Source: Thalia democratica
Lineage: Eukaryota
DNA length: 64,000 nt
Direction of reading: 5' to 3'
Assembly (NCBI GenBank): GCA_965202585.1
Contig: OZ241827.1
Span: 58,032,001 to 58,096,000 of the forward strand
The notes under the pieces were generated by a model that had not been told where the DNA came from, ran no database searches, and saw only the letters and a list, made by a program, of their open reading frames with translations. The position numbers and the translations under genes are program-made. Shown here piece by piece: positions 19,316-55,850 of this stretch; position 1 is the first letter of the stretch, and the number at the start of each line of letters is the position of its first letter.

Positions 19316-19556
19316 CTAAATTTTTCCCTGCACCCTCACAAGATTTTCGCTGCAGGGGATTATGTTGCATGGGGCGGAAACCTGAGGCCGTTTCGTCGCT
19401 AGGCAACGCCCCCTGGCGGTCTGCTTTGGCCTGCCCTTGTAGTAGCAGCCAAGAATTCTCGTTTTTATGCCATGGCTGCCGCATGTTGCCGAGCAAACGG
19501 ACCAGGGACTCGGTCTCCAAACTGGCTGACATCGGATGTTTGGACAGCTTTGTTTC
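19316..19556 (-). CDS. ADAMTSL E33 (TSP1 #13; last exon found)
   Basis: [17 protein letters not shown]...CNIIPC; in-frame TAG at 19318-19316; a possible GTGAGG donor follows 19340. Confidence 0.85.
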
Positions 19557-22500
19557 CTGGTGAAAATGCTTTGTTATAACATTTTTAGTTTTTACTTATA
19601 AAAATATTGTGTTAACAAGAAAGATGTGAAGTATCTTTCTTGTTAACACAATATACAATGAAATAAACTGGTTTTAATCGTTAATAAATGACGTATTGTT
19701 TCTGCAGCTTTATTATTACAAACGTACTTTTCTGGTCTCGGCAGGTTTTTGCAGTGGGACTTTTGGACGATTGTGCCGTTGTTAGCCACGCAGTGGACCT
19801 GCCTCAGTTGAATTCCAATTCTGTTTCCGTAACACTTCTTGCTACACTGTTGGTTTGTAACTTAGGTTTCACAAAAAGGTTACTTAGTTAATTTGTTGAT
19901 AAAAAAGAAAGAACTAAAATACATATAAGATTAATTAACCAGCTTTTTTGAACTTTTATACTGAAGCTGTATCAAAAGTAGAATTCTAAAAAACAGGTGA
20001 GTACGATAATTTCAACTCTTCAAAGAAACAACTGAATCTAACCTGTTTCCATGGTTTTGGCTTCCACTCAGGGCACAAGTTACTGAAGCAGGTTTGTCTT
20101 TGTGGCGGAAGTTGCTGGTTGCTATGGCAACTTTCCATGGCAACCTGACGAACAGTTCCGTCTGACATGAGAACCACGCAGGATATTTTTCTGAATCTTG
20201 TTCCATTTCCGCAATCAACTGTACATTTGCTCCATTCGTTTGCGTAATATCTGTAATAACATTTGGTGTTATTACTTTGTTTCTAATAAAGAGGTATTAA
20301 ACGGTTGTTGTAGTACTTGTTAAAGACTTGAACATAACAAATATTTATGTTACTGCTCTTTAAACATAACATTTTAAATGAAAATACGTTAAAAAGTACG
20401 CAATAGTATAGTGCATTAATTTTTGTGGTTTTAAAATGATATTATATGTAAATTTTCTGTAATTTGTGAAAAGCCTAAAATTGGTTACAAAATTTAAACG
20501 TAATGCTTATTGTTAAAAAAAATGTAAAAAAAAAATTATGAGACAAAGTGTAGTTTTAGTTCAAAGTATTCTTTTTTACATAAAAATTAAAATGCGTTAA
20601 AAGTTAAATAAAAACCAGATATGAGTGATTAAGAAGTCAGCACTTGACATTAAAGACCAATTATTTCCTGTAAAATTTTCCTGTAAAAATTAACATGTTT
20701 GAACTCTAATCCGCCTAATCAGGTAATAATTTCTACGACATAAATTTGTTGAAAAATGTCAAAAATGCTATGATTATTTTTCTAACTTCAATTTTTTTTC
20801 ATAAATGTTTTTATAGTTCAGTATTTATAAAGGCATAAAGAAATCGCACGTCATTTTATACGTACTCCGCATGTTTATTAAATATTTTTTCTAGACATAA
20901 ATAAAACTTGTTTTTATATTGTTTGTAGAACAAAAAATAAAAATATTTGTTTGTAATGTACTTGTTTGTATGTTGTTTTAATAAAGTTAAAAATAGTACC
21001 AACTGTGGCGGACAGTCCTGTCTGTTGCAGGGCCAGGTTTCAACTTGCGGCTTGGCCACTCCTTTGCAGTACCAATCGTTCACCGTCCTTACTCCGTCTT
21101 CTATGCACACCAGCTTGTCAGTGATGGTTCCCGCGTTCCCGCACTTTGTACTGCATTCCGTCAACCCCTCCTTTCGGTACTTGTATACTGAAAATAAATA
21201 AGAAAGCTGAGTGCAAGGCAGTTTTTAGGCTTTAGTAGTCTTTATGAAACTTTAATTTTTCAATCAAAAACTTCATATTTTTTGTTTTATAAAGCTTTTT
21301 CAAAAACTTTTAATATAACAAACAATATGTATGTTTGTAAATTATTATGAAAAGTGATATTAACGGTATAAAGCATAACACGAATGTTTAACAATATCAA
21401 CAAAAATTAAAATAAAAAAAAAGTTTGTTTACGTATAATGATAGTAAAAAATACCTTAAAATACAGAAGTTACCTCAAAAGATACCTCAAAAGTATAAAA
21501 CTTCAAAGTAAACTTACTGGTAATTTTCAGTTGAAGACTGGCATCTGCCGATCCTGCTATGTTTGTTCCCTTGCAAGAGTAATCGCCAACTGAAAAGTTG
21601 TTGAAGTTGCTGATTGAAAGAACTTTGTTGTTGTGCATCAGTCTGTATTTAGTCGAATTGTTTGTTGTTTCTATAGCGTTTCCTTTGAACATCCATTCTA
21701 TTGTTAGTTCCGGATACCCAGTCAATGGACAACCTATATGTGTCATTATCTAAACTACTTGTCTTTACTATTTGTTTAATAAGTTTAGTCAATAATATAA
21801 CCTACCCATCATTACAGTAGAGTTCGCTTTAACTCTGTAAATTGGACTATTATAATCGGTTAATAAAAGTTCTGGAAGTCCATTCATTTCGTTTGAGCTT
21901 AGAACTACTCCATCATTTGTAATATGAGGCGGGTCTGTTTATATTATATAACCAGTTTTAAATAAAACTTTAACTTTATATCGACTAAATATCAAAACTT
22001 AAATACATTCAAACGAACTTTAACAATTACAGTACTAAAAAAGATAAAATTCTCTACAGGTACTCTAGAATCAATAATTTAAGGGTACAGTAAGTACTTT
22101 TAATATCAAAACTATTTGATTGAAACTAGTTTGATGAAAGTGAGAGAGAAGTTTTAAGTCACAAAAATTTTATTCATATCCAATTACCTTTTTATTTCTG
22201 ATAAATAGTTTTGTGGTAGAACTGTAATTAGATGTAGCTATTCTAAGTATAAGCTGTAACTTTGTTTTTTGAAAACAAACTAGTTATAGTTGATGTTGTA
22301 AAGCTAATAAAAATTTATATTTAATAATTATTTTACATTACGGTGTTTTTGAAGATATGCTAATAGTTACAAATTTTAAAGCAGTTTATATTTATACTCA
22401 CCAATAATTTCTAGTATGGTTGCTTGGTAAGAGCTACCAAAGGGGTTTGTTGCTAAGCAACTAAAATGTCCCGTATCAGTTAAAGTAGTGGGAAATATTT

Positions 22501-25500
22501 CCAAAGAATTATCGATTAAAATTTGCGAGTTTCTTTGAAGACCGTTGACGTCTTTGTTCCATTGAACAAATGGTTCTGGTGAGCCTGGAATATTTATTTT
22601 TAATAAACATAAAACTTGTCATGAAATAAAATTTTGTCTTTAGTCCTTAAATAAACTTTGAAATTAATCAATGTTTCTACTGTGTGATTTTAATAAAACA
22701 TCATTGTTGAAAACTCAATGTTGCTACACACAATGTACAAATTAGATATAAATTTAATTTTAAACTGCAATAGCAGCTGCTTTGGGTGTAATTTTCATTA
22801 TTTTTTGACATAATGTACAAAATGAAAACTCGTAAAGTGTATGTAATACAACTTGCGTAACTTTTTTATTAAATATAGTCTGGCGGAAGTTTTGTAATGC
22901 TCTGACTTACTTTCTAAATCTTGTAAGTTTGCGTAATTTAATAACGTGAATGAATGAATTGAATTATAAACTACTTAGTTAGCTAATGTAAATTTTAGCC
23001 GTTGTCTGTTTGTGAATTAGTAATAAACATTTAAAAAAAGAAACTTATTCTCAAAACTAGCGTTAAAAAAAAAATTCTAATGAGTTAAGAAAAAAGTCTT
23101 ATCACTTAGAAAAAAAAGTGAAAATTTTATACATTATAAAACTTAATATTTCACTGTAATAACCTCTAGTCGGGCACCTGATAACAACGCGGGCCCCTAA
23201 TCTTGCCCTGACATGCGACCCAACTGTCACTGTCAAGTCCATGGACACAAAATCGTCAACATATCTGGTGGTGGACACAACTGTTGGTTTGTTGGTGACC
23301 GTCAATGAAACCATTCGGCTGTCATTTCCCCACTGATTGGTTGCCATGCAAACGTAGTTGCCAGCATCTGATGTTTCGGGGTTGAAAATTCTCAGGGATC
23401 CATCACCGAGCTTGATCATTCTGTTTTAAGATTTAATATTTTTATGTGTTTAACTATGAATGTTTATAAACTAGAACCTATTTCAAGTGTCTACATTACT
23501 GTTCAAGTTCCGACAACGCTAGTTTCTACAAAAAAATGTAAGGGGCCATAACTTCGAAAAATAGTTTTAGTTTAAAAAAGGCCAACTTAGTTATAATAAC
23601 TCTAGTAAATAAAATTATAATTGTGAATAAACTGAAAAGTTGTTAAGAGAAAAAAATTAAATAATAAAAAAATATATATTTTAATAAAATCTCTTTTAAG
23701 ATGAAATATTTTCTTTCTATGTTTAACTATGATTGATTAAAAATTTAAACCTAATTCAAGGGGTTAAATGAATGTTTAATTTCCGACGAAGCTGGTTTTT
23801 ATAAAATTGTAAAGAGCTATAACTTCAAAAGTATTTGTTATTGAAAAAACTCATTTAGTTATTATAACTCTAAATGATAAAACTATATTTGTGAAGAAAT
23901 TGAACGATTATTTAGGATAAAAAGTTAAGTAATAAATACAAATATGTTTTAGTAAACTCTAATATTGCTTTTAACTCTATCTTAGAACTAAAATATTTTT
24001 AAACAAATAACAATGTGCATGTAAGTCTTATTATTTACTTTACTAAAATGCATAATTCAAAATAACTACAAGTTATAAGAACTTCAGATGTCGGAATTTT
24101 AATTGTCAGAAATTGAGTAGTCGTAAACTCATTTCATGTAGTGTAGATAAAGTTTGAACAAAAAAGCTGTGTAACTAATAAATCAAACCTGTCGTTATTT
24201 TTAATTTCTTGCCCGTCTTTCATCCACTTCACTTTAATAGGGTATTCCCCTGTAACCTCGCACAAAATGGTCACCCGTCGCGACCCAACAACCACCACCG
24301 ACCCTCCGACGTTGACTATGACGTCATCATTGTACTGAAGGGGGTCGATAGTCGGTGCAACATGGATAGATGGCGCCTTTTTCACCCTATTTTCGTCGGT
24401 AGGGGGAGGCGTTGTCGTGACAACCACAGTGGATTGTTTCGAGTCCAACGGAAGGTGCTTTCGTTCTCTGTAGCCTGAAATTACGTTTTAATTTAAGAAA
24501 AATAGTTAAAGTAAAATGCATGTTTTGTTGAATGTGTTTAATGAAACTGAGAGAAATTTGAAAAGTTTTTCAAATTTTACTAAACTTATTGAGACGTCAG
24601 AAAGTAAATCATTTCAAAAGTATAAACATAAAACTCTATAACTTTTAAAAGTCTAAAAAATCTAATGGCATATTTACTTAAATAACCTAAAAAGTCAGTT
24701 TTAGCAGGCACAATCTCTTGTAGTTGGACGACTTTGTAATCGTTGACTATGTGAGGTTTCTTTCTAATTACCTTCTTGTTCACAGCTTTAGTTCCAGCTG
24801 CGAGCCTTAAATGCTGCAAAAGTTTAAAGTTGAAACGCGAAGTTGTGTGTATACATGGAATTTTAATACAATTAACTTGTGCAATGGAAGTCGCTCCTAT
24901 GCTAAGAATTTACTGAACAGATATTTTAACTTATTGGGTCGTGTTGTTACAAACTTTAAAAATAAAAATTACCTAATGATTTTTGAAATCAAATTAAATT
25001 TTTTTATTAGTATTTTGATGCAAATGTTTAATAATTCAAGGAAGCTTTTTAAGTTTGTATGTAAATTTCGTAAACGTAAAAAGTGACAAACTTTTCTATC
25101 GCTGTAATTGGTAATGTATTGTTGAAAAGCTTGACCCCCTTCTTGCAAATGGTTCTCTTTGACTTGCACTAAACCTTTGTGTGATCCGCTGGCAGCTTCT
25201 AAAGGTTAATTAGATACAAAGTTAATATTTAAAGTTTTTAATTAGTTGCTTTTCATGTTCTTACACGCATTTTCATGCAATATAAAGCTGTCATATGTAA
25301 ATCGACGCTATTATTTGCTTTTGAACTACTGCAAACTTTTAAAATGCTAAGCTTTATTATTACTTTCTATTATTAATAGCTTAGAAAAATACTATACAGT
25401 TCTTATTTAAAACAAAATTTTTACGGAATGTGAAAAATTTTGCAACCATAAATTTTTCAAATCTTTTGTTGAACTTGTGTTACAAATAAAGTTAACTTTT

Positions 25501-28500
25501 AAAGCTTTATTAGTCTACAAAGGGTTACGTAATTCAAAATCTCATTCAAACCATGTTAAGTGCATAAAGAGAGAATAAAAACGTTTTTTATGAACCCGCT
25601 TTATAAAGCTCTTTAATTTTTAATTTATAATGCAGATCTCATTAAAAAATTGTACATCATTTATCAGCATATAAATCAAGTTGTTGATCAAAAAATTAAG
25701 TTTGAGAAATTGCTGTTTATTTTAATTGAACACAAAAGTACAAGTGACGTAATTTATAAACACAAAGATTTGCATTCAGAAAAGATTTCTGATGTCTAAA
25801 AAATCTAATTTTGTTATTTCAAAATCTTTAATTTAATTAATTACTGAGTTTTTAAGCTAATTTTATTTTTCACTTATTATACAGCATCTTATCGGCATTA
25901 AAAAAGTTTAAACTTTTAAAGTAACATATTGTATAGTAACAAACTTTCGAATTTAAGTATAATTTATTTTACAAATAAAGTACTTAACGCAAAACAGTCA
26001 TAAACTTAAATTAAGTTGATTAAATTTTTGTTATTGGTGATTAGGATTACTTAACATAAAATAAAAATAAACTTTTGTTAATGAGAACGAGCAGCTTGCT
26101 CCTGCCATGTCCTCCCTGGCACTTAACCACCTGCCTCCTCCTCATCCTGATCTTGCTCATCTTCAGATTGCCCCCCTTCGTCACCATCACCTTCCCCCGC
26201 CTGCTCTTCACCCTACGCTTGTTGACGAACCACGCGTGTTTTGATGGCGCACCGCTGAGCAAAATAGAACTAATTAGCTGGGAGAAATAACATTTAAGAT
26301 CACCGCAATGTAAAAATAGCTTTAATTAGCTCCAAATGGAAGACTGATGTCCGAAAATATCGCCCATTAACGAAACATCACAAAATTTGCACTGCATTAC
26401 TCAATATAGCGCGCCAAACTATATGAGACCCTTTGAAGCCAAAATAGCAAAAGTTGTTTGCAGATATTTGTTTATTTTTTAATGTAAAACTAGGCCACCG
26501 TCTGAAGTTGTTGGGCAAACAGGAGGCGAAATTTCCTTTGATTGATGTCACCTTGTTTGCCCACTTGCCATCAAATAATCAAATGAGCAAATAAAGAGGC
26601 AGATAATCAAAGCTAATTGCCTCCATCGTTCTCTCCCGTTTGCCGATAAGCAAACTTTATTTTGTAGCGCATTGACCTTGCACGTGACGGTGTTTATTGT
26701 TTGCATTAAAACTCACTTTTTGAAGCTGCACTTGGCGATGATGGTGGTTCCAGGGATGACGAAGGCCTTCAGCGGGAGGGTCAGTTGGAGGGGGATTTTT
26801 CTGGCCGATTTTTGTACGAATACTCTCAGCCCTCCGTTGATCTTGGTCGGGTTGGGCCTTCTTTGGATGGTTGTTTGCCCTTCTTGATTCGAAGCTGTAA
26901 AATACTTAATTAGAACAATATACAAATTACTTAGACGTAGAAGACTTCAAAAGGTAATGAATTATATTTAATTAGACACATGGTTGACTCACCCAAGCTG
27001 GACATACATTTCCTGTGCAGTGAGCAACTCCTTCTGACCGGAAGTGCTTTCAGGTTTTTGCAGTATTTCGATTTCGCACTAGTTTTGTGCCAATTTCCGT
27101 ATTTCATGTACATGCAGACAACTTTTCTTGTTTGCCAACCTTTTCGTAACTTTGTGCAGTCGCCTTTGCACTAAAAAAAGATTTCAGCTGTGCATTTTGA
27201 AGTTTTTGAAAGTAATTAAAAAAGTAAATTAACAAACATAATGTTATTTATGAGTTATAGTAATAAATGCCCAGTAGTAACATTTTTATATAAAAATATT
27301 TTAAAACTGTTTAATTGTTGCTAATTATGTCAATTACAGGCAAGATACTTAATAAATTGAAAAATATATATACTTCACTCCAATCTTCCGCAGTAAATTT
27401 CGGTTCGCACTCTTTAACTTTGCACTTTCTCCTTGTCAACCGATACGGTTTGCTCTTGGAACAATATTTTGAAGGCACCTGAATCAATTTGCCTGTTCCT
27501 GTTCTCTGCTTGCACAGGAACGAAACTTCACGAAACCCGTTGCCACATTGCTCAGAACACTAAAATTATTACTTTTTTTCAATGAAAAATTCTCAAAATA
27601 GGTGAGTAGGCTCAATTACTAGGCTAAGCTCAATGAATGATCTTAGTCTTTTAACCTTGTCAAATGTTCAGATCTCGCTTAAATTGGTTTAATAATTTAA
27701 GAAAAGAATCTTACTATCAAGAATATATTTAGGTATGTCAATAGATTTTTAAAACTAACCTTTCCGAGACCAGACTTCATCCAGACAGGGGGACAGGTGG
27801 CAAACCCGCAAGGTTCAACCGACTGAGGTTTTGGGTTTGGGCACATGATTTCAGGCATGACGTCATCGTTGGTGACGTGGTGAGTGGAATTTTCAGGCAT
27901 GAACTTGCACGTGACAGATCTTTTTCTGATCCCTCTGCCGCACATTTTCGAACACGAACCGTACTGACCTATTTCCCATCTGAAAAATTATTGGAAGGTT
28001 TTCAATATATTTTTAGTTTATTATATTATTTAAAAGTTATTATAAGGAGAGCCTATTGAAAATATTAAAACTAGTTTAATTCAACTTACTTTTTATTTTT
28101 ATTTATCAAAAATGTTACTTTAAAGGCTATGTTTTAATTATAAACATAGATACATTCAGCTTTTTTAAAGACACTTATATAATAACTATTAAAAATTCAA
28201 ACTATATCATTTAGTTTTTTTTTTCTAATCAAGTTGTAATAAAATGTTTTAGTTATGTTTAGATAAGAATAAATAAACTTATTTCATACAAACATACCAA
28301 ATCAGAATTTTTTTGTTTAAAGTCAGCTTAAGTATGAAAAAACTGCAAAAAGATATGACATCAAAAATTAATTAGAACAGGTAAACTTGTTTTATAATTA
28401 TTAAATGCGTTATTACACTATTGGCTCGTATGTAGCTTATGCAAACATTAATTTTATAATAAGTATTTTAAAGTTTAATGAGTTTATACGAAGCAAACAT

Positions 28501-34500: not shown

Positions 34501-37500
34501 ATTACAAAATATATTACGTTATGCTATCTTAAACCAAATTTTAAGCTATGTTTTTTATCATATAGCTTATTTATAGTCTTCAATTAATTTAGGGTCTATT
34601 ATCAGCATGAATTTTCTGCAACAATTAATTAAAAAATAGTTTTACATGACTTATTGTAACTTTAAATATTTTTTTACTAATGTGAAAAGTGTTTACAAAT
34701 AGTTTTACTTAACAACATAAGTAATACTAGCTTTTTTTACCTAATTCCTTTTGAACTGTTAAATGACAAAATGCAAGTAAAAATCGTTAAGATGACAGTA
34801 ATAACTAAACAAATAGTATTAATCTAATTATGCTTTGTGACAAGAAAATTTGTTTAATTTATAAAAGCTTGTACATTAATGACTAAGCATACACAACATT
34901 TTTCACATTAAATTTTTTAAAGTTTTCAAACCATGTAATTTTAACTTTAAATGTGTTTTCCTAGGAAACAAACTCTCTTACACAATTTGAAAATAAAAAT
35001 ATTAATTGAAATTTATTTTCATATATATAACATCAAATATCAATTTTATATGATTTTTGTATTATAAGTATAAATAAAAAAAGCATGAAGTTTGTGATTA
35101 ATTAAGTGAAAACATCTTAAAATTACACAAAAAAATAGATTACGTAAGCATATTTGAAGGTTTAAAATGGGTAGATCTTTTTATGGTTAATTTTCTATCG
35201 AGCTATACCGGGTACGATTTTATGTATATAATTGCAGTAGTTTTGCAAAAAAGGCTCCAATATTTTGATGACATCGTATCTTATTTTGGGTAGTCTACTT
35301 TTTAAAGTCATACAAAAAAGTTACAAAAATACGTCGCGCTGAAAAGTAAATTGAACAATCTTGCTTCATTAAAATTCGTACTGCTAGTTTTTGGAGCTTT
35401 ATTTTTGTAAACACAAGAATAAGTGTCTCTGCCAATAAAAAAACACACTTTCAAGGTGATTTTAATTGTAAACAAATACAAACACGTGCATAGAAAGAAA
35501 AAGAAAACTATTTAAATTTTTAAATGTAAAGTTGTTTAATTTACTTATCAACGCGAAGTATTTTGTAACTTTTTTGCACAATTTTTCAAAGAAAACTACC
35601 CAAAATAAGGTATGACGTCATCAAAATATTGGAGCTTTTTTTTTGCAAAATTGCTGCAACTAAAAGTATTCAATATTTAAAATAACCAATAAAAAGTCCT
35701 ACCGGTTCAAAATGCTCATTAATGTAAAACCACAAAATTATCTTAATAATTTAGCTTTCAAAAATTTCAACATCTTATTTTTGCGTTACCGTTCATTTTA
35801 TTTTTGATATTTTTAAACCAAACTTTATAATTGATAGATGTCAATTATAGGAACGTGTTAATTTGATTATAACACTCTACCGTGCAAAGCTAATAGATGA
35901 TATCGACGAGTGTTTAAGTGTTAAATGATAGAAATAGACCAAAAAGCAAAAACACATAAGAAACGCTGTGCGAAGGCCAAGTAACCCGTTTTTTATGCAA
36001 ATATTTACATTTGATTATATGTTCGAAAATATATGTAGTTTTAGCTCGCTCTGGTATTCTAATCACAAAAAAAGCTCTTTGTTTTTTATTTTTTGTTGCA
36101 ATTTGTTTATCCATTTTTTCTTAAATATAATTGTTCTATTCAAATATTAGAAAAGAAGTCTATATTCAAAATTTTCTTTGAATCGACCAACCTGAGTAAG
36201 TTTTAAATAATAAATAAACAAAAAAAAACAGACTTTTTTAATGATATATTTCAACTATAGGTTTAATAACAGGTTATTTTTGTTTTAAAAATTACTTAAT
36301 TTTTAAATATTCATTAAAACCGGTCAGAAACACCATTAAAGATAATTTTTTGTAAATAATTTTTTTCAAGCAACGTCAAAATATTTACAACTCGGTCATA
36401 CTTTTTTTTCTAGTTTAGAAAGTATTTCTTAAAGTATTTCTTTTAGAAAGTAAAAACAAAAACTAAGAAAAAAACAAAATATATTTTTTATCTTAAAAAA
36501 ATAGCAAACTAACTGAGCTCTGACTTCACGCGATGCCTCGTTCACCAGTTCAACAGACCTCCTTTTATTATTAAGCGGGAAACTACTTTCTAATGGAAGC
36601 CTTGTACCTGCATTCCCGCTTTCAACCCCCGAGCCGTTTGATAGCGGCTTGTTAGCCGTGGAAAAATCGCCGGTCGGTTGCCAAGAAACGGCGGCGAAAA
36701 TAAGGTTGCCGTGGAGACGCAGTTCGAGCGAAATGACAAAAACGATGACAATTTTGTAAAATAAAAATCTGCTGCTACTTCTAGCTGCTGACATTGTTTT
36801 CAATTTTTTGATATCATCTGACTACTTGAACAATTACTCGGTGCTCTGCTTTGCTTGAGTTCTGCCTCATAATTTGTTGATAAGCATGCTCGTATACTTT
36901 TTTACATTCAACAAGGTTTTAATCGCTGAAATGGTGATTTTGATTAATCAAAATTAATTATCAACCAGTTGGGCAGAGTCCAAGTTATATGCTTTTTTTT
37001 AATTATGTTACTCTTACTAATAGGTTTGATAAAGCAGGAAGCTAATGAGATTAAAATTGACTACAATGTAATTCTTTTTTTATTGACGTCTAGTCGGTAA
37101 TATGCGATGGAAAATTAATTAATGTTCTTGTTTACCTTGCTTTGGGATCGGTTTTAATAAGTGCAAATTTTCACATTGTGTAATGTACGCTGTCATAGCT
37201 ATTGGTGTGTCAGCAATTATTTAGTTTGTACTTGATGCTACAAGTTCTGCTTAGATTTGCAAAAATCATTCATAGCAAGTAAAGCTTGCATACAAAACAG
37301 GTAAATTAAATTACTTTTAAACTGTAGTCCAACATACTTAAAACAATAAATAACAATTTAAGTCATTCTAGGTAAAAAAAAGTCTAAGTTAATAAAAACT
37401 TAGCACTTACTAAAAAAACTACCTAAAACATATTACACTATTGAATTTATTTCTTTTGTCTTTCTGTTTTATAAAATTTTTAAAGAGTTGAAGCCCGATA

Positions 37501-40500
37501 ACTACCTAACTTAATAGAAAACTTTTACTGGTATATATTGTGATTTTATCTTTTTTTGACAATTTCTTTAATGTAAATTCGACTTAAAGAAATTATAAGG
37601 AAGGTTTCTAAACTAATCTTTATTAACCAAGGTTTAATTAACAAAATAATATTAAACAATACTATTTTTGTCAGTACTTTAAAAACATGTTACAGTCCTT
37701 AAATTTCATCTACATTCTGAAAAAAACTTAAAAACAAAAATGCAAGTTCTTAGCTTATAAGCTGAGCAAAAACTGTTTTACTCGAAAACTTTCTTGTCTA
37801 ACTCGGCTCGTACAAAAATTCCTATGCAAAGCCTTACATACTCACAATAATTTGTGAGCAAAGAAGTTCTAGCCTTTTTCCTTTACATGGAAAGTTATCT
37901 CATGTTCGCTATTTACCTGTACTACAAATGCTGTTATTTTTCTACAATTTTTCGTCTAAAACAATTTATGTAGTTTCATAAGTTTTAAATCGTGTTGTTG
38001 AATTATAAAGAAGCTTTTGTTTACAAAATACTTCTGTGTAATGTTTTTAGAAGTAATCTATGTACATAGCTGTCTTAGTTTTATATAAAAGTTATCAAAC
38101 TAAATAAGTAGTTTATACACGAAAGTAGTTCGAATATATCACTAAAGTCCGTTGTTTTAATATTTTAAATGTTAAAATAAAAGTATTAAGCACTTACTAT
38201 AAAATGATTGGCGTTTTAACGTTTTTAATTTTTTTTAGTTTTGTTAAAAAGTTTTAAAAAGTTGTAAAAAGATTAAGTTGTCAAATTATCTACAGTATAA
38301 CTAAAAATAACAGTGTGTCTTTGATGTTATTTTTATAACAAGTATTTTTATTAAATCTGTTCTATTAATTAAATTTTTTGTATCGAAATGCTTAAAGTTC
38401 AACATTAGGCCTCTTTTTAAAGATTTAAAAAAAGATTATAGTTTATAACTATTATAATTTGTAACGTAATTCAAAGTTGATTTTACATATAAAATATTTA
38501 AGTGTCAAAATAAACAGAAAAGCAGCAAAAAATTGAATTTAAACTTCAAATGTATTTTAGGTCGCCTTCAGAACATCACTGGCAGCTTTTCAAATCTTAT
38601 CAGCTGACTCAAGTTAAAGCAGTTTCAAAAGAAACCCTTTATCCCTACTTTGCCGAACAAAAGATATCTAAATTGCCTACATGAAAGGTATCGTTTCGAG
38701 GCAAAGGCATGAATACATTGAGGTCAACACTTCAAAAGGATGCTTGAGAAAAGTTTTGAGTGATTGAATTTTACCAGTTTGGAACTGCTCTTGGCGTTGA
38801 CAGCTTCTTACGTATTAGAGCTGCTCGATAAGAGTCTCTAAAGAAGCGAGATAAGATCTCAACAACATCAATCATAAGAGTTAAAAGTTCCGATCAAAGA
38901 AACTATATTCAAGCATAATAACGCTTATATTTTACCAAGCTTAGAAGTTAGTAAACTTTTAATACAAGTTGCGTACTAACTATAAACATTTTTAGCAATA
39001 TTTGTTCAATAATCTTTATAACCTTCGTTTTACACTTTTTTCATCAATTTAAAAACTTAGCTGAATACAATATTTGTTTGAATTTTTGATATATACCAAC
39101 TAGTTTTTCAAACTAAAGGTATTTCAACTTGATTTCAAATAATTTGATTTCTCTATTTAAGTTTTGAGTTACTTTTAAAAAATATTTGTGTTGCTTTTCC
39201 TTTGTCTATTATCGATTCAATAGCGTTTTATTTGACTTACTTTGATCGTAACGTTAGGTAATTTAATTTTAGTAAGGTTATGAGTGATACATGATACCTG
39301 AATACTGTTACTTAAGCAGTGCGTGGTGAAAACAGGCCAATTACACGACCCTTTTGTTCCCATCAGAACACTTCAACAATGAATTAAGTCATATTTTACC
39401 AATTGTCAATTTTTACAGGCAACCAAGAAAACCTTACTTACATTTCTCATGCAGTTTTGCTTCACAAAATAGAAAAACCGCAACCAAATAGACTAAAGTA
39501 AATAAAAAAAAAGTTACCTGGTCTCGTTTTCAGTTTTTGGTGGAACGGGACAGGGGTCCCTCTTGCAGGTGGCCAGCTTCGGAAGGGGATGTTTCGATCG
39601 GTCGCATCTGCTGTCTGCTGCCAGGCGATTTGAGAGGTTGTCGTAGCAGAACGGTATTGACACCGACATTCCTGTGAAAATATGTTAAATGAAATTTTAT
39701 CGTTTTTGAAAAAGTTTTTTTTCAGTTAGATGTAACTTAAGCATTATTTCAAACTCTAATATTTTCATATAAAATATCTTTTTTTTTTCTACAGTCCTAT
39801 GAATGCTCGCAAAAACTAAAAGTTTCATAATTCATTGTTTACAAACAAAAACTTTTAATAATGCTGTAAATTTTGATAAAACTTTCAATGTTGAAGTAAA
39901 ACTGTGTTGACAGTGTCAATTCATCGTCATTCCTAGCATACTTTCACGGCATGAAAACAGGTTATGAGCTTCATCCTTTTAGAGTCGGATCAAAGCCGCG
40001 ATGTAATTGCAACCCGATACGATGGAGGTATTTTCTTAGGTGCCGGCCCAACAACAAACAGGTGCCAGCGTATCGAGTTGTGCCGAAAATATCGAATTAT
40101 CCGCTCGTAATTGCCTCGCTCCATGCCGCCAACAACGCCAATTTGTCCGAACGACAAACGTTTTCGAATATCTGCAAATCCCTTTTCGCCCGCTCTAAGC
40201 CCTCGCTTAAACTGAGGTTTTAATTTCACGTTGCCATGGAGTGCTTGTCTGAAATTGTGCTAAAGTGCAAACGCCAAAGTGGACAGTTTGGTGTCTGGAC
40301 ACGCAAAGTTGGGTACAGACAAAAGGTAATGGCGTGCAGAAAAAGTGCTAATTGTATAATTTGTTGGCTGTTAGACAAAATCTGGCTTTTTGCCTTTTTT
40401 TACACGAAATGGCGCAGTAAACTTTATTTTACGTTAGAAGTAAAAATAGTATCTAAATGTCTTATAGTTGTCTTTATTGTGCATTTAAATTTACATAATA

Positions 40501-43500
40501 GCAAAGTATATTTATATCTAAATTAAAGTTTAAAAACTAACGTTTATCATAAGCTTAAATAAAAAAACAACTATATTTTTTATAGAATAAAAAATAGTAT
40601 GTTTAGGATAGAAATATTTAGAGTAAATAACACTTTTAAAAAATGCGTTACTTTTTTTCTGTTAAAACAATTAAAACAGTAACTTTTGGCCATGTAATCA
40701 AAATTAATTTTTTTTAGTAAAACGGTTTAGAGGTTACAAGTGTTTACTTGTTGCAAAATGCTTTACACGGATTTCTGATCAAATAAGTATTAGTGAAAAG
40801 TTTCTAGGTAACTTAAAACTGCTATAATGCTTACTAAGCTAAAGGTTATCTAAACACGTAGAAATTTACTAAGTAGAAAACAAAATATTACATCAACAAA
40901 AATATATAACTAATTTATCATCGTTTTTAATTATTTTTTCAATTTTAAACTTAAAAGTAAATTTATGGCGGCTAATTAAGCTATTAATGTTTAATATTCC
41001 AAAATCCTTTTTTAATGTGTGATAAAAATTAACAAGCTAAGCTGTATGCTACGCATCGATTTTATTAAATTATAGTTTAGTTATATACATATGTTGTGAT
41101 GATTAACGATTGAAATAAACTCAAGATCAAACAATTTTTTTTGCCTATTTATTTCATATACTAAAAAAATATATATAAAATGTAAACATCATACCATAAG
41201 CTAATTTTAAGTAGTTAAAACACTTGTTTTATTTTAAACTAAAAAAATCTAAAAAACAAAAGTTAACAATGTTACACATTTATTATTGAAAAGAGATTGT
41301 TAAAATACTATTTTGTTATTTTCATATCAATCTTAATTAATAAAAGTGTGAACTGTTTAGGTATAATTAATTTACCCTTTTTGAAGTTTAATTTTGATAA
41401 ACACAAGTAATTAACTACTGTATATATACTTACAATATACCTACCTGTATATTTTTTTTTATTACACTTTTAACATTAGAAAAAAAATATTATTAATTAA
41501 TTCTTATCTTAGGATTATTAATCTTAAACCTTTTTTTGACAATTTATACATAAAGTTTCTTATTGTCGACTACTCTATCAAAATATTCCAATTTATTTGT
41601 GTTTATAAAAAATACACACATGTTGTCATACTTTTACATCTTGTTATCTTTTTATTTGTTATAAATTAACAGTTGTGATTGATTTTTTTTTTAAAAACAC
41701 AGACAGAAATATTAAAAAAAAACTATTTGGTGCCGAAAAGAGTTTTTTCGCATTTAATAAGAATTAGGAAAGAGTTAAATTTTAGGTCAATCTAAAATAA
41801 TAAAGTATGTTTAATCTGTGAAAGCTTACAAAAGATTACTGATGAATATTTTAACTAGCAAAACGCGTAGCTTGCACGAGAATATTACTAAAATATTTTA
41901 ATTTTTTACTTATTTCATTTTACAAAACACCAACAACTGAATATAGTAACAACTTTAAAGTTGTAGATAAAATACATAGACACAATATAAAATAATACAA
42001 TAATAAAACAACAATAGTCATATGTGTACTACCTTTTTAAATATCCGCAAATTTTTAGAACAAATATAGATAAATCTGTGTATTTGAAACATGTAAATTT
42101 TAAAATCTCACCAAATCCACAAGTGACGCTGCAGCTTGTCCACTTGACAAACCTCCACACAAACTCCTCCTTGACAACCACCACCTCCTTCTCGATCACC
42201 CTGACAACAGATATCGGCGACCCCATCGCCTCATTCACCCGCCGATGCGTGTCGAAGGGACACAAACCCAAAAAGCATTTCTGCAATTATTAAGATTGCA
42301 CATTTTTCTTTTATAAATGAATTTCAAGAATTGTTTAGATATAAAACAAAAAAAAAACAATAACTTTACAATTAATAAAAGTTTTTTCACTGTGAAACTA
42401 ATTTTCGAGTAAAGCAGTAATTCAGTCAAATTTAGACATTAGCTAGCATTAAAGTTATATTTAAAATAAACATTTGAGAGGTTTGAGCGAAGTCCCCTAT
42501 CGGCTTTGTGACGCTTGTAAAATCACCTTCTTTTAAATGCCGGTCTTACACAAACTACAAAACCCTCAATCTCCGAAGCAAACATTACAACTGCCGTTTG
42601 TTTAATCAAGAGTTCACAATCCAACTACAACACGACATTTGGGGTATCGGCTCTTATCGCAACTGATAATCTAAAATCAAACTCGGATAATTTTTAAAAT
42701 TCAATTTAGCTTATTAATGATGCCGTTTATAAATGGGAAAAAATTTGCCGCAATAAAATGTTTTGTTGTCAGTATGTTGCAGAAATAGATTAAATTTTTC
42801 ATAAAAAACTTTTAGTGTGTGCAGAGGTAAGTTTATAAGTTTATCTGATATTTTACTCGATAAAATCAAACAAAATACTCAGTGGCTTTTAAGTTTAAAC
42901 ATGACTTTCCTAAAATTTAGTTTACATGCTATTTCTTAGTTTGAGCTAGTTGATAAAATCAGTCAAAATACTTTGTACTTTTTAAACTTAAAAACTGCCT
43001 CAATAAAACTTTAGTTTATGTGTTTTTTTAAAGCTTTATAAGTTTTGAATTGCTCAGAATTGGTTTTTATTGTATAAAAACTTATTAAGCTTTATAATTA
43101 AAAAAAAATAAATAAAACAGATAACAGTTTTATATCAGCAAAATTAGATTAAACAAAGACAAAAGGAAATGTCTCCTCCTACAAAATTTTTAAAACGAGT
43201 AAAAAAAATACTCAAAAATAAATTTTGAAGAATATAAATTAGTATTAAGAAAAAAATAAACTAAATTTAATTTTTTTTAAATTTAAACGTAATAATTTAA
43301 AATTATTATTAAGTTTCTAACTGAGGATATTACTTTTACTTATAAGTACCATCTTTTTTTATAAGTTTTTTAAATGCATTTTTATCCTTTAATTTTTTGA
43401 TAATTAAATTTGTTTTTAACACAAAGTCACCACTAGATTTCAACATCACAAACATTTATAAAGTACTTTATTTGCTTTAGTCATTTCTACTTTAAATACC

Positions 43501-46500
43501 TCAGTGTGAACGGGAGCGGGTCCCCTGCACCTGGGTTCGCTCTTGTACAATTCCTCCTTTCTAGTGATCCCCTCCTCCACACATTCCACCCTCCTCGTCC
43601 TGAATCCTCCCATCCCGCAAGATTTCGAACATGCGCTCCACTCCCTAGCCTTCCATCTGTTTGTATTTAAATTAGAAATACTTTTGCTAAAATGGTTGTG
43701 AAAAAATGTTTATAATAAAGTTTTGGTTTTGCATAAAGAAAAATTCTCTGTTTAGGTTTTAGTCTGAAAAAGTTTAACAGCTGCTGCGTTTTTCAGACTA
43801 TGAAAGTTAGTTCGTTAGAAAAGACTTAAGTTGAGGGAATTCGATAAAGTTTGTTTCTGATACAAAATAAAGTTTATCTTTATTGAATTAGTGTAAATTA
43901 AGAGTTTTACAAAAAGACTAGTTTAGTTTTTGAATTATAGAATAATCAAGCTTAAAAGTATTTAACTTGAATTATTTACGATCAAAGTAGGTTATTAAAG
44001 TTTTTTTTTATTTAGCATAACTAAAGTAGCTTGAAAACTTACTTGGCAACTGGAGTAAACTTCAATACTGTTGAAGGTTTTTTCTGTTTCCTTTTCTTTG
44101 ATTTTGTTGTCCGCAAGTTTTTCCTGGCGTTCTTATCTAGAAAAAATCACTCTAGTTGCTAAAGTAAAAGTTGTTTTAAATCATCTTCAAATATACCTTT
44201 TAGTGATGTTCAAAAACTTATAATACATCAACTAAGCTCACAATAAGGTATCACTAAAACAAAGTTGAAAAATAAGTTTTATCACATTTTCCACTCAATT
44301 AAGCAAAAGTTACATCTGCAAGCATACGTCATTAAACAAAGTTAACAATTAAGCTTTGTTGCTTACAGTTAATTGAATTACTAAAACGTTTTCTAAATTA
44401 AATGAGAGCTTACTTTTATAAAATCTGTGTTTTGAACTACTATTTTTAACATTGAAACTAAAACATATAATATTTTTGAAACATAAAAGCCATTAAAAAA
44501 CTGACTAGCTAATATTTAAATATAGTTTATGACTCATCAAATATATAAGGATACTTCAAAAAGCATAATTTTACGAAATTATAGAAGTTACTAACCCTTC
44601 TTGCAAACTGTGTTGCACTCCATTACAGTGTTGGGTTGTCGTCTTGTTTCACAATTAACTGTAGGAGTCGCTCTGTTGTCGCATATGATGTACCTATTTC
44701 GCACTCCACTACCGCAACTAACACTACACTGTTCATTTAAGTAAATAAGTTAAGTAAAAATCATGTGATGTGTCCACTTTTTTAAGTAAACAAAAAACGC
44801 TTTATGGTTGTTTAAGTTTATTGTATTGAGTATAATTAAAGTAACAAATTAATACTTTTTGCTTATAAATTAATCTATTTTTTAATTAGTATTAAAAATA
44901 ATATTAAGCTGATAACTTTTTTCAATGAGTTTTATTTGGAAATTTTTTCAAGCTTTGCTTTCTTTAGAACTTTTTGTTGCAAAAAAAAAAAAAACGATCA
45001 ACTTACATCGGACCAGTTTCCAACGATCCACTTCGGGCACTCGAACGTGTTGCACGCTTCAATAGTTTCCGGCTTCACAAAGTTGCCGCACTCCGACTCG
45101 TCCTCATGGATCCTGACGATGTCTCCGTTGTACTTCTCCTCCACGCACCTGATCGTCCTCTGCAGCGTCCCGTTCCCGCAACTCACGCTGCAAGCTCCCT
45201 TCTCGGTCGTCCTCCAGCTACAAAATCGAGTCTTTAGCACCACGAAGCGGAAAGATAACATGATTAAACTAAACAGTATGTAGTTTTTTTTTTTGTATTT
45301 TTAATTTTAAGTGATGTAGCATGCTCTAGCGGTTAAAATAAATGTGAGAAACAACTCACGTGTGTATGCTCGAGTATTCGTAGTGTTGTTCTGGGTACTT
45401 ATAAAATCTGTTGTAATAAAAAATCAATAATTTAATTAAATTTTAAAATGTTTAAATTTAAACTTTAAAAAAACTTTAAAGTAAATAACAAAATACTAAA
45501 ATGTTCAAACTTTTGTTTTGTAACCACTTTGTCGAAAAAATAAATATTTTTACTTAAATATATATAAAAAGACGTTTGCTTTTACGTTTTATCATAAACA
45601 ACATACCTGATGCCATTGATAGAGGGGCGCGCTTCCTTGCATAGGGGTAGCACGCATTTCACCTTGTGTACTTTCGCCTCGCCCAAACCCTCCTCAATGC
45701 ATCTGGAGTCGGGAAAAATTTCCGAGCTGTTCGAAGATTTGCACACTGGCATCATTTCTTTGTAGCCTTGAATATATTGGAGTAGTGTGAAAATGTATAT
45801 ATTGACTTAATTTCTTTATTTAAAGTAGAGAATTTCAGAGATATTTGCTTTTATTACTAATTGCTAATGAAGTTTAAAAAAAAGTAATTTAAAATCTCAA
45901 ATCTTAACTATAAGCAATAACTGAGGAAAATTTACCAATAAAAAAAGGTTTTTATTAACGTGTCGTTATATTGAATATTTATTTCAACTGGTTTTGTTTT
46001 TATGCAATAGCAAACGTTTATATAAGTTTGTTGAAAAATTTAAGTAAATTGATACTTTAGTGAGTATTACGGTTTATACAAAAATATATGTTGTGATTTA
46101 ATTTTAATCCAACTAATCCATTTTTATGAAATATATTCTGCATAAATTAAACTAAGTAGTTCATTTATAGGTATTTTAGTTTACGCACGATATCTTCACA
46201 AAACTTAATTTAAACCGCAATAGTTTTATATTACTTTGGTTCACAAACCGCATTAATCATTTGCAACATTTTGGAAAAATAATGTTCTTTAAATTGAACA
46301 ATTTAAAGAACAGAAATTACCGAAGACAGAAATTAACTGAACTAGTTAAGGTTTAAAGGTTTTGAGCTTTTTTCTCTTCTTTAAAGTAAAAAAATAAAAA
46401 AATAAAAAATTAGTTTTAAAACTACAATAACGCTTTTAATAGTTTTACAGAACAAAATTAGAATAATATTAAATTGTATTTTCCGAATAATTTTTGTTTA

Positions 46501-49500
46501 GTTTAAGCTTGGCAATGAATTTTAACATTAGACTATGATAAGTTTGTTATTGGCAATTTTTATTTTAATTCTTAATATTTATTACTAAAACTTAATGATT
46601 TTTGGACACGATATATATATTTTATTTTTAAAGATTGCATAACTTTTTTAATGTATTATTTTTTTTCAGGCAGGTAAAGATATACTTTATGGAATTCATA
46701 GTTGCACAGAATGATTAATGTTACATAGAAAAATCAAAAAATACTAGAGTTTTTCACTTTGCAACTTAGTTAAGTAATTAAACAAAATTTTAATTCATAG
46801 AAGTACATATTATAATCTTCTAATTATATGCAATGTAGATTACTTAAAAAAACCGCTTCAAAAAATTATTCTTTTTAGTATATATTTTTTTTCTTTCTTT
46901 GTTTATTAAAATATCTAAAAGTTGTTTAATGCTAAGTTAAAATACTTATAAACTATAGTGTATACAAGCGAATTTTTTTTAAGTATTTTTTACAAAATTT
47001 TTGTTCAAGGTTCAACGATTTTTGAATACAGTCAATTTTCAAATGAATATTTAAAAAAAAGACTTGTTTGTATAATTAGTTTACTTAAATAAGTAGAAAA
47101 AAATGTATATACCATTTTTTAATTGGTGTGTACATAAGCTTTTTATAATATTCTAAGTTTTTAACGTTAGAAAAAGCATTAATTAATCAAATATAAAAGC
47201 TTCTGTTGAGAATCCAGAAAACATAATAAACAAACCAAACCACAATAACAAACTTGTAAAAACAATCAGTAAACTGTACCACAGTTACAAATACTATTTA
47301 CTATTTAATATAAAAAGTGTGACTCACCATCGCCGCAAGTGGCTGAACATGGAGCGTGGTTGCCAGTAGCAACGGCTAACGACCAGATGACGGGTTTCAG
47401 TTTGTAGTATTTGTATCTGATGGTTCTGGCGCCCTCGTGCGGATGCTTGCATCCCTGAATGAACGGGCACATTCTGTTGACCAACATCGTCTGTCGTTTT
47501 ACCTAAACGTTTTCAAAGCTTTTATCTTTAATCAGCTTTAAGTTGCTTTGATACTTTGCTAAACTTTAAAAGAACTTAAAGAACCAGAAACAACTTGCTA
47601 CACTGCAAGACTTTTGTTTGTTGTATACATATGTATGTTTTTTGTTAGTAGTTTGTAAATGTTAGTGCACTTAATTTTTTTAACTTGCTATATAATACTT
47701 TTTTTATGTACAAAAAAATTTTAAACACAACTTTTTGTGAAATTTTCAAAGTATAAATTTTACTTGTATGACGATGAATTATATTTAAATAGCTGTTTTT
47801 TTATATTTATAAAAAAAAAGTTTATTTCTGCCTTTTATGGATACACATTTATTAATGTATTTTAGCTGTAAAACTAAATTTATGTGTATATTTTAGTCTG
47901 AGAAAGTATGGTAAACTATAATTTTGAAATGATACAAGCTTGTACTATGCTTAAAAACATGTCTTAACATTTTGGCTATTATACTGAAAAATTTACTTCG
48001 TAAGGCTTATTGGAGCTTGTACAAAGTATAAATTATTTAATTACCGGTTTTTGTTAGATAATCTTTTTGGCATTTAACACTGAACGTAGAAAGTATTTCT
48101 ACTAAATATTGTCAAGAAACTTATGTTTAAATAACTTTAGATTAATTGAAATTCTTGCGCGAAACATTTAAAAATAATATACCTAAAAAGCTTTTATTTT
48201 ATGTGCCAAGTCTTATAAACTTAATTACTATGTTAACTATTACAAAACACATTATACCAACAGTATTAAGGTAGTTACCTAGTTTTGTTTGTTTTTTAAC
48301 TATCATTGACAGTAAAACTTCATTGAAAAATTTATGTATTAAAGGTTATGCAAACTCAAACTTTTTTTTATACTTTATACTTCTATGCTGATTTAAGATA
48401 AAATATTGCTAAATAAAAAATTTTTTTTATTAACTTTAACTTTTTATATGCCTTAAAATATATTCAAGTCAATTTAAAATTTCGTAATAAAAGCAACTTT
48501 TAGTTGAGTTAGATTAGTTTAGCTTAAAGTTAAAGAATTTCATAATTTAAAAACATAACTATAGTTAAGAAAAAAAACTTCCAGTTAGTCATTTCAAATA
48601 TAACAAATGGAAAGTTTTAGTTTTTTAAGAGTTTTTGAGGTTCTTAAATTTATAACTTTAGATGTTTTGAAAATTTTAAAAATAAAACAGCAAGTTTTAT
48701 GTTTTTTTACAGTTTAAGTTTTCTTTTTCTTTAAAAATATTTCATGTAATCTTTGTAAGGTCATAAGCATTCGCTTTATAGTTTTTGAAAAGAAAACTTT
48801 TATTTTGTTTACTAAATAAATACTAACGCTTATAAAGATTTAGAATTCACAAAAACAATCTTAAAATCAGGTGATACTTTTAATTACTTAGGAAATTACT
48901 GTTTATTTAAAATGATAAAATTATATGGAACCCTATTAAAAAGTGTGAAAGCACATGAATAGATTTCACTAGTAATACAGCATGCAAACTTACTACAACT
49001 TTCGCGTTTTCTTTTATCGGCCCTGCGAGAGAGTAAACAAAGTCGTCCAAATTTGACAGCTCCTCGGCATCAGCTAGCGGTTGTTTTGCTTCTTCGTTCA
49101 CTTCTATCATGCTTTTCTCTTTAGATACTATATCTGCAATGTAGTTTGTTATGTAAGCCGAACATAGTTGTCGTGTATTCGTAAATTCTAAGAAGCTTGC
49201 ATTTTTACATTTTTTAGTAATAATTATGTAATGATTTTCTATTTTTATTAAAGTTAAAGAGTATTAAAAAAAAACTTGAACAAACAGCTGTTTAAAAATT
49301 GAACGAAATTAAGTAAATATGTTATGTAAATGAGCGACAAAAAAGTTTTTTGTAATGTTCATAACGACAAGAAGCTTAAGTAAAATTTCAAATGCTATCA
49401 GTGTAATACGTTAAAATGTTAAACTAATTTACCGAAGCTAACATCCCCAGAAACTATAATGTTTGTGCTTGATGCTGGAATCTCTGTGATTGTTTCTGAA

Positions 49501-55442: not shown

Positions 55443-55489
55443 AAATTTCAAATTCCTCAAAATTAAAACAAATTGCTGAACAAAAGGAG

Positions 55490-55850
55490 CAAGCGGCAAA
55501 AATGATTGAGACAAACAAAAACTTGCGTGACTGCGCGCACATACTTGCTACTGCTATGGTTGGCGAGCAAATAGCACGTGGTGAGAAGTAGTTACGTCAC
55601 AAAGGCCCGCCAAAAGCCACTGTTTGTGACGTCACTGTTGTGTATCGAAGACAAGTTTTGTTTACGGCGACGTTTACCGCGCAACCGACTTTGCTTTGCT
55701 TTTTGTTTGGCGATTAGCGACAGTTATGTTTACTTCTGTCTTATCAACGAATTACGCGCGAGGTTTGTGTGTTTACCTGCGCACTTTAATTTGTGCTTTA
55801 TTGAGCAGATTATCTTGTTTACTGATTGTTAATTGTTTATGAAGGTGAAT
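55490..55850. promoter_or_regulatory. CpG-rich island upstream of the ADAMTSL signal-peptide exon; candidate promoter/5' region
   Basis: Sharp rise in GC/CpG; perfect CRE palindrome TGACGTCA at 55627-55634; GC-box-like ggcccgcc; CACGTG E-box. Confidence 0.4.

Follow-up and report, generated by a model that had tools for sequence, protein, structure and literature searches.

In Caenorhabditis elegans, punctin isoforms secreted by the motor neuron decide whether a cholinergic or a GABAergic postsynaptic domain is formed in the muscle, and the encoding gene, madd-4, has vertebrate orthologs in ADAMTSL1 (punctin-1) and ADAMTSL3 (punctin-2). The long worm form has TSP1-TSP3 as its specific part, and the short form, MADD-4B/Punctin S, consists of TSP4-TSP7, Ig, TSP8-10 and PLAC (PMC13142758), that is, of seven TSP-1 repeats, one Ig domain and PLAC (PMC9083331). 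In the literature examined, such a long/short punctin design via alternative promoters is described for the worm only. Mouse Adamtsl3 has three splice variants, two of which carry a truncated C-terminal PLAC (PMC13668732), and a limited literature search yielded no description of a vertebrate ADAMTSL1/3 form that is shortened at the N-terminus through an internal promoter. The use of several promoters to produce long, medium and short secreted isoforms with shared C-terminal domains is known from cle-1/collagen XVIII (PMC13142758), which, because it belongs to a different gene family, is a mechanistic precedent only.

A short form built on the same general plan, backed by transcripts and with a conserved frame, is now seen in a distant marine animal, at a locus within a window of 64,000 nucleotides, the whole stretch of DNA analysed here. 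The evidence makes it probable that the gene has an alternative first exon that brings a start codon of its own and is driven by an intronic promoter, which would give an N-terminally truncated isoform of ADAMTSL1/3 type. Both the worm gene and the new gene are ADAMTS-like, with TSP1 arrays flanking the Ig region; in both, the 5' exon of the short form lies downstream of the long-specific exons and is joined to shared 3' exons, and both short forms lack TSP1 repeat 1, the cysteine-rich and the spacer modules and retain seven TSP1 repeats plus Ig (PMC9083331, PMC13142758, PMC11385328). However, of the 10 worm repeats the short form begins with TSP4, of the 13 repeats here the new one begins with TSP1 repeat (TSR) 7, and the long-specific part holds three TSP repeats in the worm and six here. 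The original prediction had suggested that both starts may lie at the same domain boundary, and this does not hold: the worm layout is four TSP, one Ig, three TSP and PLAC, whereas here three TSP are followed by four Ig and four TSP, and PLAC was not found. In the worm, the promoter, its neuronal control by UNC-30/PITX and the clustering of GABA receptors have been demonstrated experimentally, whereas for the new gene we infer promoter and function. The parallel with MADD-4B is architectural only.

The host gene lies on the minus strand and encodes 13 TSP1 repeats, an ADAMTS cysteine-rich module and four Ig domains, as judged by Pfam and a motif scan. The features were drawn from open stretches, Pfam matches and splice-site listings; several exon borders and the 3' end are approximate:

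42112..55596, minus strand: part specific to the long isoform (Pfam, motif scan, translation of 55596-55390)
near 55540, minus strand: putative signal peptide of the long form (translation of 55596-55390)
53010-50694, minus strand: ADAMTS cysteine-rich module (Pfam ADAMTS_CR_3)
47349, 45192, 44728, 43631 and 42133, minus strand: TSP1 repeats 2-6 (motif scan)
39518..39671, minus strand: exon E17, the last long-isoform-specific exon, with the second half of TSP1 repeat 6 and a short linker
27760..27979, minus strand: exon E18, the first shared exon, with the whole of TSP1 repeat 7
19340..27759, minus strand: rest of the shared body (Pfam TSP1_ADAMTS and I-set, motif scan, splice-site listing)
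from 27559 and from 27170, minus strand: TSP1 repeats 8 and 9 (Pfam)
26894-21518, minus strand: four Ig-like domains (Pfam I-set)
CSxxCG at 21155, 20225, 19846 and 19499, minus strand: TSP1 repeats 10-13 (motif scan)

TSP1 repeat 1, recognized by a WSxWSxCSxTCGxG-type motif at 54343, is preceded at a distance of only about 1.2 kb by the signal-peptide-like start and is followed by the cysteine-rich module, for which the ADAMTS_CR_3 match on 50694-50912 (E 3.9e-05) was above the cut-off. The ADAMTS spacer gave no Pfam match on the open stretches 49422-49553 and 48910-49263, and the module is split over exons. The Ig block is formed by I-set matches in four exon groups between TSR9 and TSR10, with TSP1_ADAMTS matches on either side of it. 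A motif scan of all minus-strand frames of the window found no metalloprotease motif (HExxHxxGxxH), in line with a family that has neither a metalloprotease nor a disintegrin domain, a pattern scan found no Kunitz cysteine pattern, which would mark papilin, and downstream of 19340 neither a PLAC cysteine pattern nor a Pfam match was found, although a PLAC that is split over small exons or lies outside the scanned stretch would escape such a scan. By its domain architecture, the gene is an ADAMTSL1/3-type (punctin) matrix gene of a marine animal: its long form looks like vertebrate ADAMTSL1 and ADAMTSL3, in which TSR1 and the cysteine-rich module are followed by a spacer (putative in the new gene), a long run of TSRs, a group of Ig domains and a final TSR array. 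Human ADAMTSL1 and ADAMTSL3 have 13 TSRs. The domain count bears out the predicted downstream order of three TSP1, four Ig and four TSP1, beginning at the seventh repeat. An automatic exon-chain model of the shared part (801 aa) skipped domains, was truncated and was discarded.

The 11.5-kb intron between E17 and E18 contains the alternative first exon and the sequences that precede it:

36514..36794, minus strand: protein-coding portion of the alternative exon (93 codons and 2 nt)
36506..36513, minus strand: splice donor gttagttt of the alternative exon (border CA/GTTAGT)
36795..36873, minus strand: 5' untranslated part of the alternative exon (RNA contigs, alignment)
36874..37125, minus strand: upstream block, probable promoter of the short isoform (conservation; putative function)

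The ATG at 36794 opens a frame of 93 codons plus 2 nt that ends with the last exon base at 36514, and an in-frame stop lies just upstream (36824-36822). The E17 donor (ACCAG/GTAACT, last base 39518) leaves two nucleotides, phase 2, and the E18 acceptor (tttttcag/A TGG GAA, first base 27979) provides the third base of the codon; the alternative exon likewise leaves two nucleotides, and CA + A gives Gln. The predicted 281-nt frame, its GTTAGT donor, the phase shared with the E17 donor and the E18 acceptor, and the N-terminal peptide quoted as the translation from this ATG are all found in the sequence as described. E18 opens exactly at domain position 1 of its TSP1_ADAMTS match (positions 1-55, E 1.1e-10), and E17 matches positions 23-55 of the same family (E 0.041). 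The exon has a GC content of 47%, in contrast to 32% and 21% in its flanks. Because ATG-initiated frames of at least 93 codons arise in 7.4% of 1000 local-composition shuffles of the 11.5-kb intron (at least 121 codons: 0.6%), the open reading frame alone is only modestly unusual, and the weight of the case for the exon comes from the RNA junctions and from conservation.

The encoded peptide begins with a basic N-terminus, and its hydrophobic core spans residues 15-23; about 65 additional residues are unique to the short isoform. Hydropathy of the N-terminus peaks at 3.5 (nine-residue Kyte-Doolittle), and the hydrophobic run is broken by Lys14. The N-terminus resembles a signal peptide and may be cleaved, and the short isoform would probably be secreted. 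The similar appearance of this N-terminus (SRKFLFVSIIF) and that of the long form raised the possibility that the exon is a duplicate of the long-form first exon, but blastn found only chance matches of 7-11 nt. The KRR/S processing-like site that had been proposed is present as a motif, but furin cleavage requires Arg at P4, so that the missing Arg excludes a furin site; in the most divergent relative, L003, the motif is replaced by SRKLGRK, and it may be a dibasic site at most. Neither the exon peptide nor a 130-codon open stretch matched Pfam, and Rfam gave no match on 35800-40600; thus, the peptide corresponds to no known domain, and no known RNA family accounts for the conserved upstream block.

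RNA evidence was taken from assembled Logan contigs of two marine metatranscriptome runs, X1 and X3, from mixed whole-plankton ocean samples. In both, the contigs join 36514 exactly to E18 at 27979, the very junction that had been predicted, across a donor-acceptor span of 8.5 kb. The junction was read from the loose-end letters of contigs matched to the start of E18: beyond the loose ends at 36514 (X3) and 36517 (X1), the letters are those of the initial 18-27 nt of E18 in reverse complement. The E18 letters are identical after E17 (39518) and after the alternative exon (36514), so that one acceptor is served by two donors, and an E16-E17 joint at 39670/42111 (cut +1) is present in X1, with record 14 of X3 covering both exons. 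No joint of E17 to the alternative exon was present among the loose ends listed, which are the minority of all loose ends. Depth, given as assembler word depth and thus a poor measure of expression, is 80 and 42 (X1) and 25-36 (X3) on the alternative exon; E17 has 87 and 42, and the intron around the exon has 0-2. The variants of X3 at 36549, 36577, 36579 and 36585 and five gaps in its 5' UTR contig match the haplotype of L001, one of three related marine-metagenome contigs, and X1 carries a synonymous T>C at 36516 that is shared with a second, L002; therefore, the junction is used in two diverged lineages. The alternative 5' exon is transcribed and is spliced in frame to E18.

Transcripts also extend upstream of the ATG, as had been expected: record 13 of X3 covers 36711-36873, without a loose end, record 2 of X1 reaches 36821, and RNA depth is zero at 36900-37099 in both samples, so that the RNA has its 5' limit at 36873, in contigs of a kind that seldom reaches the cap. 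About 250 bp upstream are 86-94% identical in L001 and 78-86% in L003, in contrast to about 50% for the intron beyond the donor. By analogy with the control of madd-4B by UNC-30, TGATTAATCA at about 36950 was considered as a PITX-type site, but it is kept in neither L001 nor L003 and was rejected. The short isoform likely has its own promoter, and this falls short of proof because spliced-leader trans-splicing could also form the 5' end. In that case, exon and junction would be real, the 5' end would stem from trans-splicing or other processing of the long pre-mRNA, and the ratio of long to short form would be set by RNA processing, not by transcription. Record 2 of X1 stops precisely at 36821, immediately behind a TAG that might be used as acceptor, which fits this reading, as a branch of this kind would interrupt a de Bruijn contig. 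However, the X3 contig continues without a break to 36873, and its depth is exon-like, whereas the rest of the intron has a depth of 0-2; L003 has lost all three AGs of 36826-36818, yet conservation is strong in the block further upstream; and an A-rich, TATA-like AAAAAGTATA (36902-36893) precedes the 5' limit of the RNA by about 20-30 nt. We therefore regard 5' end formation by trans-splicing or processing as unlikely.

With a promoter of its own, the short isoform would arise as follows. Transcription would start inside the 11.5-kb intron, most likely at about 36875-36885, from the conserved promoter. The exon carries a leader of 80-90 nt, the ATG at 36794, the signal-peptide-like N-terminus and the roughly 65 unique residues, and 36514 is spliced to the E18 acceptor at 27979 in the same phase as E17. 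In the domain map, the short form lacks TSR1 and the cysteine-rich module and keeps the Ig domains and the C-terminal TSRs; the predicted product, whose length had been put at about 1093 aa, would be devoid of TSR1-6 and of both the cysteine-rich and the spacer module, and would retain TSR7-9, the four Ig domains and TSR10-13. If it resembles Punctin S of the worm, it might act as a separately regulated secreted matrix or synaptic organiser from which the N-terminal ADAMTS-type module has been removed.

The same exon is present on all three marine-metagenome contigs, and the frame, which had been expected to be conserved in relatives, is open throughout L001, L002 and L003. The donor is invariant in L001 and L002, and in L003 a phase-2 GT at the equivalent place would give an exon of 257 nt, 24 nt off the 281 nt of the window. 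It might nevertheless be argued that the transcript yields no functional protein, that an intronic promoter or enhancer fires, that splicing to E18 is incidental and that the open reading frame is tolerated, not selected. In this regard, dN/dS of the unique peptide is 0.63-0.80, by which measure selection on it is weak, and its last third is not alignable in L003. Upstream ATGs are found in the leader, one at 36870 (18 codons) that is kept in all four sequences and one at 36817 (5 codons) that is lost in L003. The peptide also has no Pfam family and no homolog outside the lineage, and frames of such length occur in 7% of the composition-matched shuffles. On the other hand, the coding indels across the three contigs are only +6, -6, +3, +6 and -3, so that all four or five of them preserve the frame, whereas a multiple of three was found in only 1 of 12 non-coding indels. 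The window and L001 have the phase that fits E18, and so has L003 if its plausible donor is used; the nine-residue hydrophobic core of the signal-peptide-like start is kept in the window and in all three contigs and is almost invariant even at the nucleotide level; the exon joins exactly where the TSP1 domain begins; and in two samples its RNA is as abundant as that of the long-form exons. Taken together, a merely incidental transcript is quite improbable. A junction created by chimeric assembly or by DNA in the RNA libraries, as could be suspected of assembled contigs (not raw reads) from mixed-organism samples, is next to negligible, since exact GT-AG borders were obtained from two samples that differ in haplotype, the junctions E17-E18 and E16-E17, which are undisputed, behave alike, and coverage extends evenly over introns in the DNA-like runs X5 and X8 but is confined to exons in X1 and X3.

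An alternative first exon of this kind, backed by RNA and conservation, is in the first place an isoform annotation. The described vertebrate variants are C-terminal, whereas the form reported here is truncated at the N-terminus. A synaptic role of the short isoform, as in the worm, may be considered, which raises the question of whether the short form marks particular neuron classes. For other animals, the findings point to the intron before the last three TSRs preceding the Ig block as the place to look.

A further possibility is that the long/short punctin switch, with a separately promoted, secreted short form that is devoid of the N-terminal ADAMTS-type module, is ancestral in bilaterian ADAMTSL1/3-type genes and is not a nematode speciality. 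If this were true, and if the animal is a tunicate, the switch would have been retained in a chordate, and a hitherto overlooked short isoform, made from an internal promoter and with a synaptic role of its own, would be expected for vertebrate ADAMTSL1/3. At present, an ancestral switch is doubtful. Homologs of the exon peptide were sought with a word index and, exhaustively, with phmmer among 1.84 billion representative proteins, and were found only on three closely related marine contigs (P0001-P0003); therefore, an ancient origin of the exon gains no support from the homolog search. The additional matches were of low complexity and lay in unrelated long proteins. As a minor observation, the eight-nucleotide donor of the alternative exon is identical to the donor of E18 itself.

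Both splice joints onto E18 of this punctin-type gene exist in RNA of two samples with exact GT-AG borders: that of E17, the exon upstream of the 11.5-kb intron, and that of an alternative first exon within the intron. The stretch was found by word search in marine metatranscriptome runs of two samples (X1/X2 and X3/X4) and in DNA-like runs of two organisms (X5, X8), and the region 36300-42299 was compared with contigs of X1, X3, X5 and X8. Exons and introns are covered alike in X5 and X8, while X1 and X3 are confined to three blocks, 36514-36873, 39518-39672 (E17) and 42114-42282 (E16), with a depth of 0-2 elsewhere. Ahead of an X3 contig that begins at 36514 stand 18 letters that match, in reverse complement, the opening 18 bases of E18. 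An X1 contig aligned from 36517 has TGG ahead of it, followed by 27 bases of E18; TGG replaces TGA through a synonymous T>C at 36516, a variant also present in the marine metagenome contig L002. In both X1 and X3, E17 runs at 39518 into identical E18 letters. Word depth is 80 and 42 (X1) and 25-36 (X3) for the new exon, and 87 and 42 for E17. The predicted splicing of an alternative 5' exon into a short isoform is thus borne out by the 36514>27979 junction. The X3 variants at 36549, 36577, 36579 and 36585, together with five gap letters within the leader, fit the haplotype of metagenome contig L001, which has a 5-nt insertion in the leader, and X1 agrees with L002; therefore, the junction is in use in two diverged lineages.

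Features of the gene and of the alternative first exon
55390-55596, minus strand: probable first coding exon of the long form, beginning M-CAQSRKFLFVSIIFAACSF
near 55540, minus strand: signal-peptide-like start of the long form
54343, minus strand: TSP1 repeat (TSR) 1
between TSR1 and TSR2, minus strand: ADAMTS cysteine-rich module
5' of the 11.5-kb intron, minus strand: TSR2-6, TSR6 divided over E16 and E17
last base 39518, minus strand: 3' end of E17, ACCAG/GTAACT, two bases of a codon left over
36902-36893, minus strand: A-rich TATA-like run, 5' of the RNA limit
36794-36514, minus strand: coding part of the new exon, ATG at 36794, 93 codons plus 2 bases
first base 27979, minus strand: 5' end of E18, tttttcag/A TGG GAA, giving the codon's third base
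3' of the 11.5-kb intron, minus strand: TSR7 (the whole of E18), then TSR8 and TSR9
between TSR9 and TSR10, minus strand: four Ig-like domains
3' of the Ig-like domains, minus strand: TSR10-13

The original prediction of an intronic ATG exon with a phase-2 donor, in the phase of the E17 donor and the E18 acceptor, agrees with the sequence, and the peptide it quoted is the exact translation of the frame from ATG 36794. A stop lies in frame shortly 5' of this ATG (36824-36822, minus strand). The exon is closed by the donor CA/GTTAGT, with 36514 as its last base on the minus strand; like E17 it ends with two codon bases, and CA+A across the junction to E18 encodes Gln. The donor of E18 has the same eight bases, gttagttt, as that of the new exon, and the GC content of the new exon is 47% versus 21-32% in the surrounding region. 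When the 11.5-kb intron was shuffled 1000 times with local composition kept, 7.4% of the shuffles contained an ATG ORF of 93 codons or more, and 0.6% one that reached the 121 codons of the real ORF. These features are genuine, yet not compelling by themselves.

The domain order from Pfam and motif scans is that of the ADAMTSL1/3-punctin architecture, and the predicted count of 3 TSP1, 4 Ig and 4 TSP1 in the short form is correct. The motif scan of the window found neither a metalloprotease motif nor a Kunitz pattern; no PLAC domain and no obvious terminal exon were found after TSR13 (19340 and downstream, minus strand). The start of E18 coincides with profile position 1 of TSP1_ADAMTS, and therefore the short form starts on a clean domain border. 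Its N-terminus, with 2-3 basic residues and a 9-residue core of mean hydropathy 3.5, is what suggests that it would be secreted. A copy of the long-form first exon was rejected as its source: the putative signal peptides are alike by residue, without nucleotide similarity.

An exhaustive search of 1.84 billion representative proteins gave only three relatives of the new-exon peptide, all on unspliced genomic contigs of marine metagenomes: P0001 (on L002; 95% identity), P0002 (L001; 84%) and P0003 (L003; 62% over residues 7-73). L001 shares 91-94% of its bases with the window in the 250 bp upstream, in the leader and in the coding part, and intron identity falls to 53% within about 20 bases past the donor. 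For L003 the values are 86% (37001-37125), 92% (zone round the RNA 5' limit), 81% (first 70 codons) and 50% (intron). Coding indels are +6 in L001 and -6, +3, +6 and -3 in L003; among non-coding indels of both contigs, 1 of 12 is a multiple of three. L003 has a phase-2 GT at the corresponding site, giving a coding part of 257 nt, 24 shorter than the window's. The hydrophobic core is the best-conserved stretch of the peptide, and the final third, including the KRR-S motif, is not kept in L003; with a dN/dS of 0.63-0.80, residue-level selection is weak.

How the 5' end of the short transcript arises is best read as initiation at a promoter inside the intron that would drive the alternative first exon. 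This reading is based on the RNA 5' limit at 36873, up to which RNA is unbroken (X3 record 13, without a loose end), the silent stretch 5' of it (no RNA at 36900-37099), the strongly conserved upstream block and the TATA-like run. In the joint table for 36300-42299, E16>E17 is the sole exon-exon joint, and none links E17 to the new exon. The chief alternative is trans-splicing of a spliced leader to the long pre-mRNA, for which one X1 contig that stops at 36821, directly after a TAG, could be adduced; however, an X3 contig goes 52 bases beyond 36821 at exon-level depth, and L003 has lost every AG of the region. The leader also contains an upstream ORF (36870-36814, minus strand; 18 codons, TGA end) whose ATG is 3-10 nt away from the putative start of the transcript. 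This ATG and a TGA stop are present in all four related sequences, with the ORF 12 nt shorter in L003; the element may belong to the core promoter or control translation.

The short punctin isoform adds a case to the known long/short arrangement. In C. elegans, alternative promoters give long and short forms of madd-4 (PMC11385328, PMC6920096). MADD-4L has 10 TSP-1 repeats, a cysteine-rich module, a spacer, one Ig and PLAC, and the short form has 7 TSP-1 repeats, Ig and PLAC (PMC9083331); TSP1-3 are long-specific, with TSP4-7, Ig, TSP8-10 and PLAC making up the short form (PMC13142758). Both short forms drop the ADAMTS-type N-terminal module and retain seven TSRs plus Ig. However, three TSRs precede the Ig block here versus four in the worm, so the domain boundary is not, as had been proposed, identical to that of MADD-4B, and six TSRs are long-specific here versus three. 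For vertebrate ADAMTSL3, the variants described in the literature covered are C-terminal (PMC13668732), and a limited search found no report of a short form from an internal promoter. The new-exon peptide has no homolog outside the lineage, and therefore nothing argues for common descent of the worm and Thalia short forms; an independent origin is no less likely.

Within the E16-E17 intron lies a GC-rich block (39970-40230); each strand has open frames there, of 79-90 codons, and neither Pfam nor Rfam gave a match. The block is well represented in the DNA-like runs, RNA contigs reach a depth of only 5, and the E16>E17 joint bypasses it. An open frame of 401 codons at 59714-60916 (minus strand) had no match in a Pfam search. 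At 10194-12764 (plus strand), two long ORFs of 505 and 345 aa lie side by side, with a stop in between. Their Pfam matches (E 2e-13 and 5e-08) are to LDL-receptor class A repeats and to a 7TM domain of the rhodopsin family, which suggests an LDLa-containing GPCR gene of the relaxin- or LGR-receptor type; a short intron may split it, or a stop may interrupt it.
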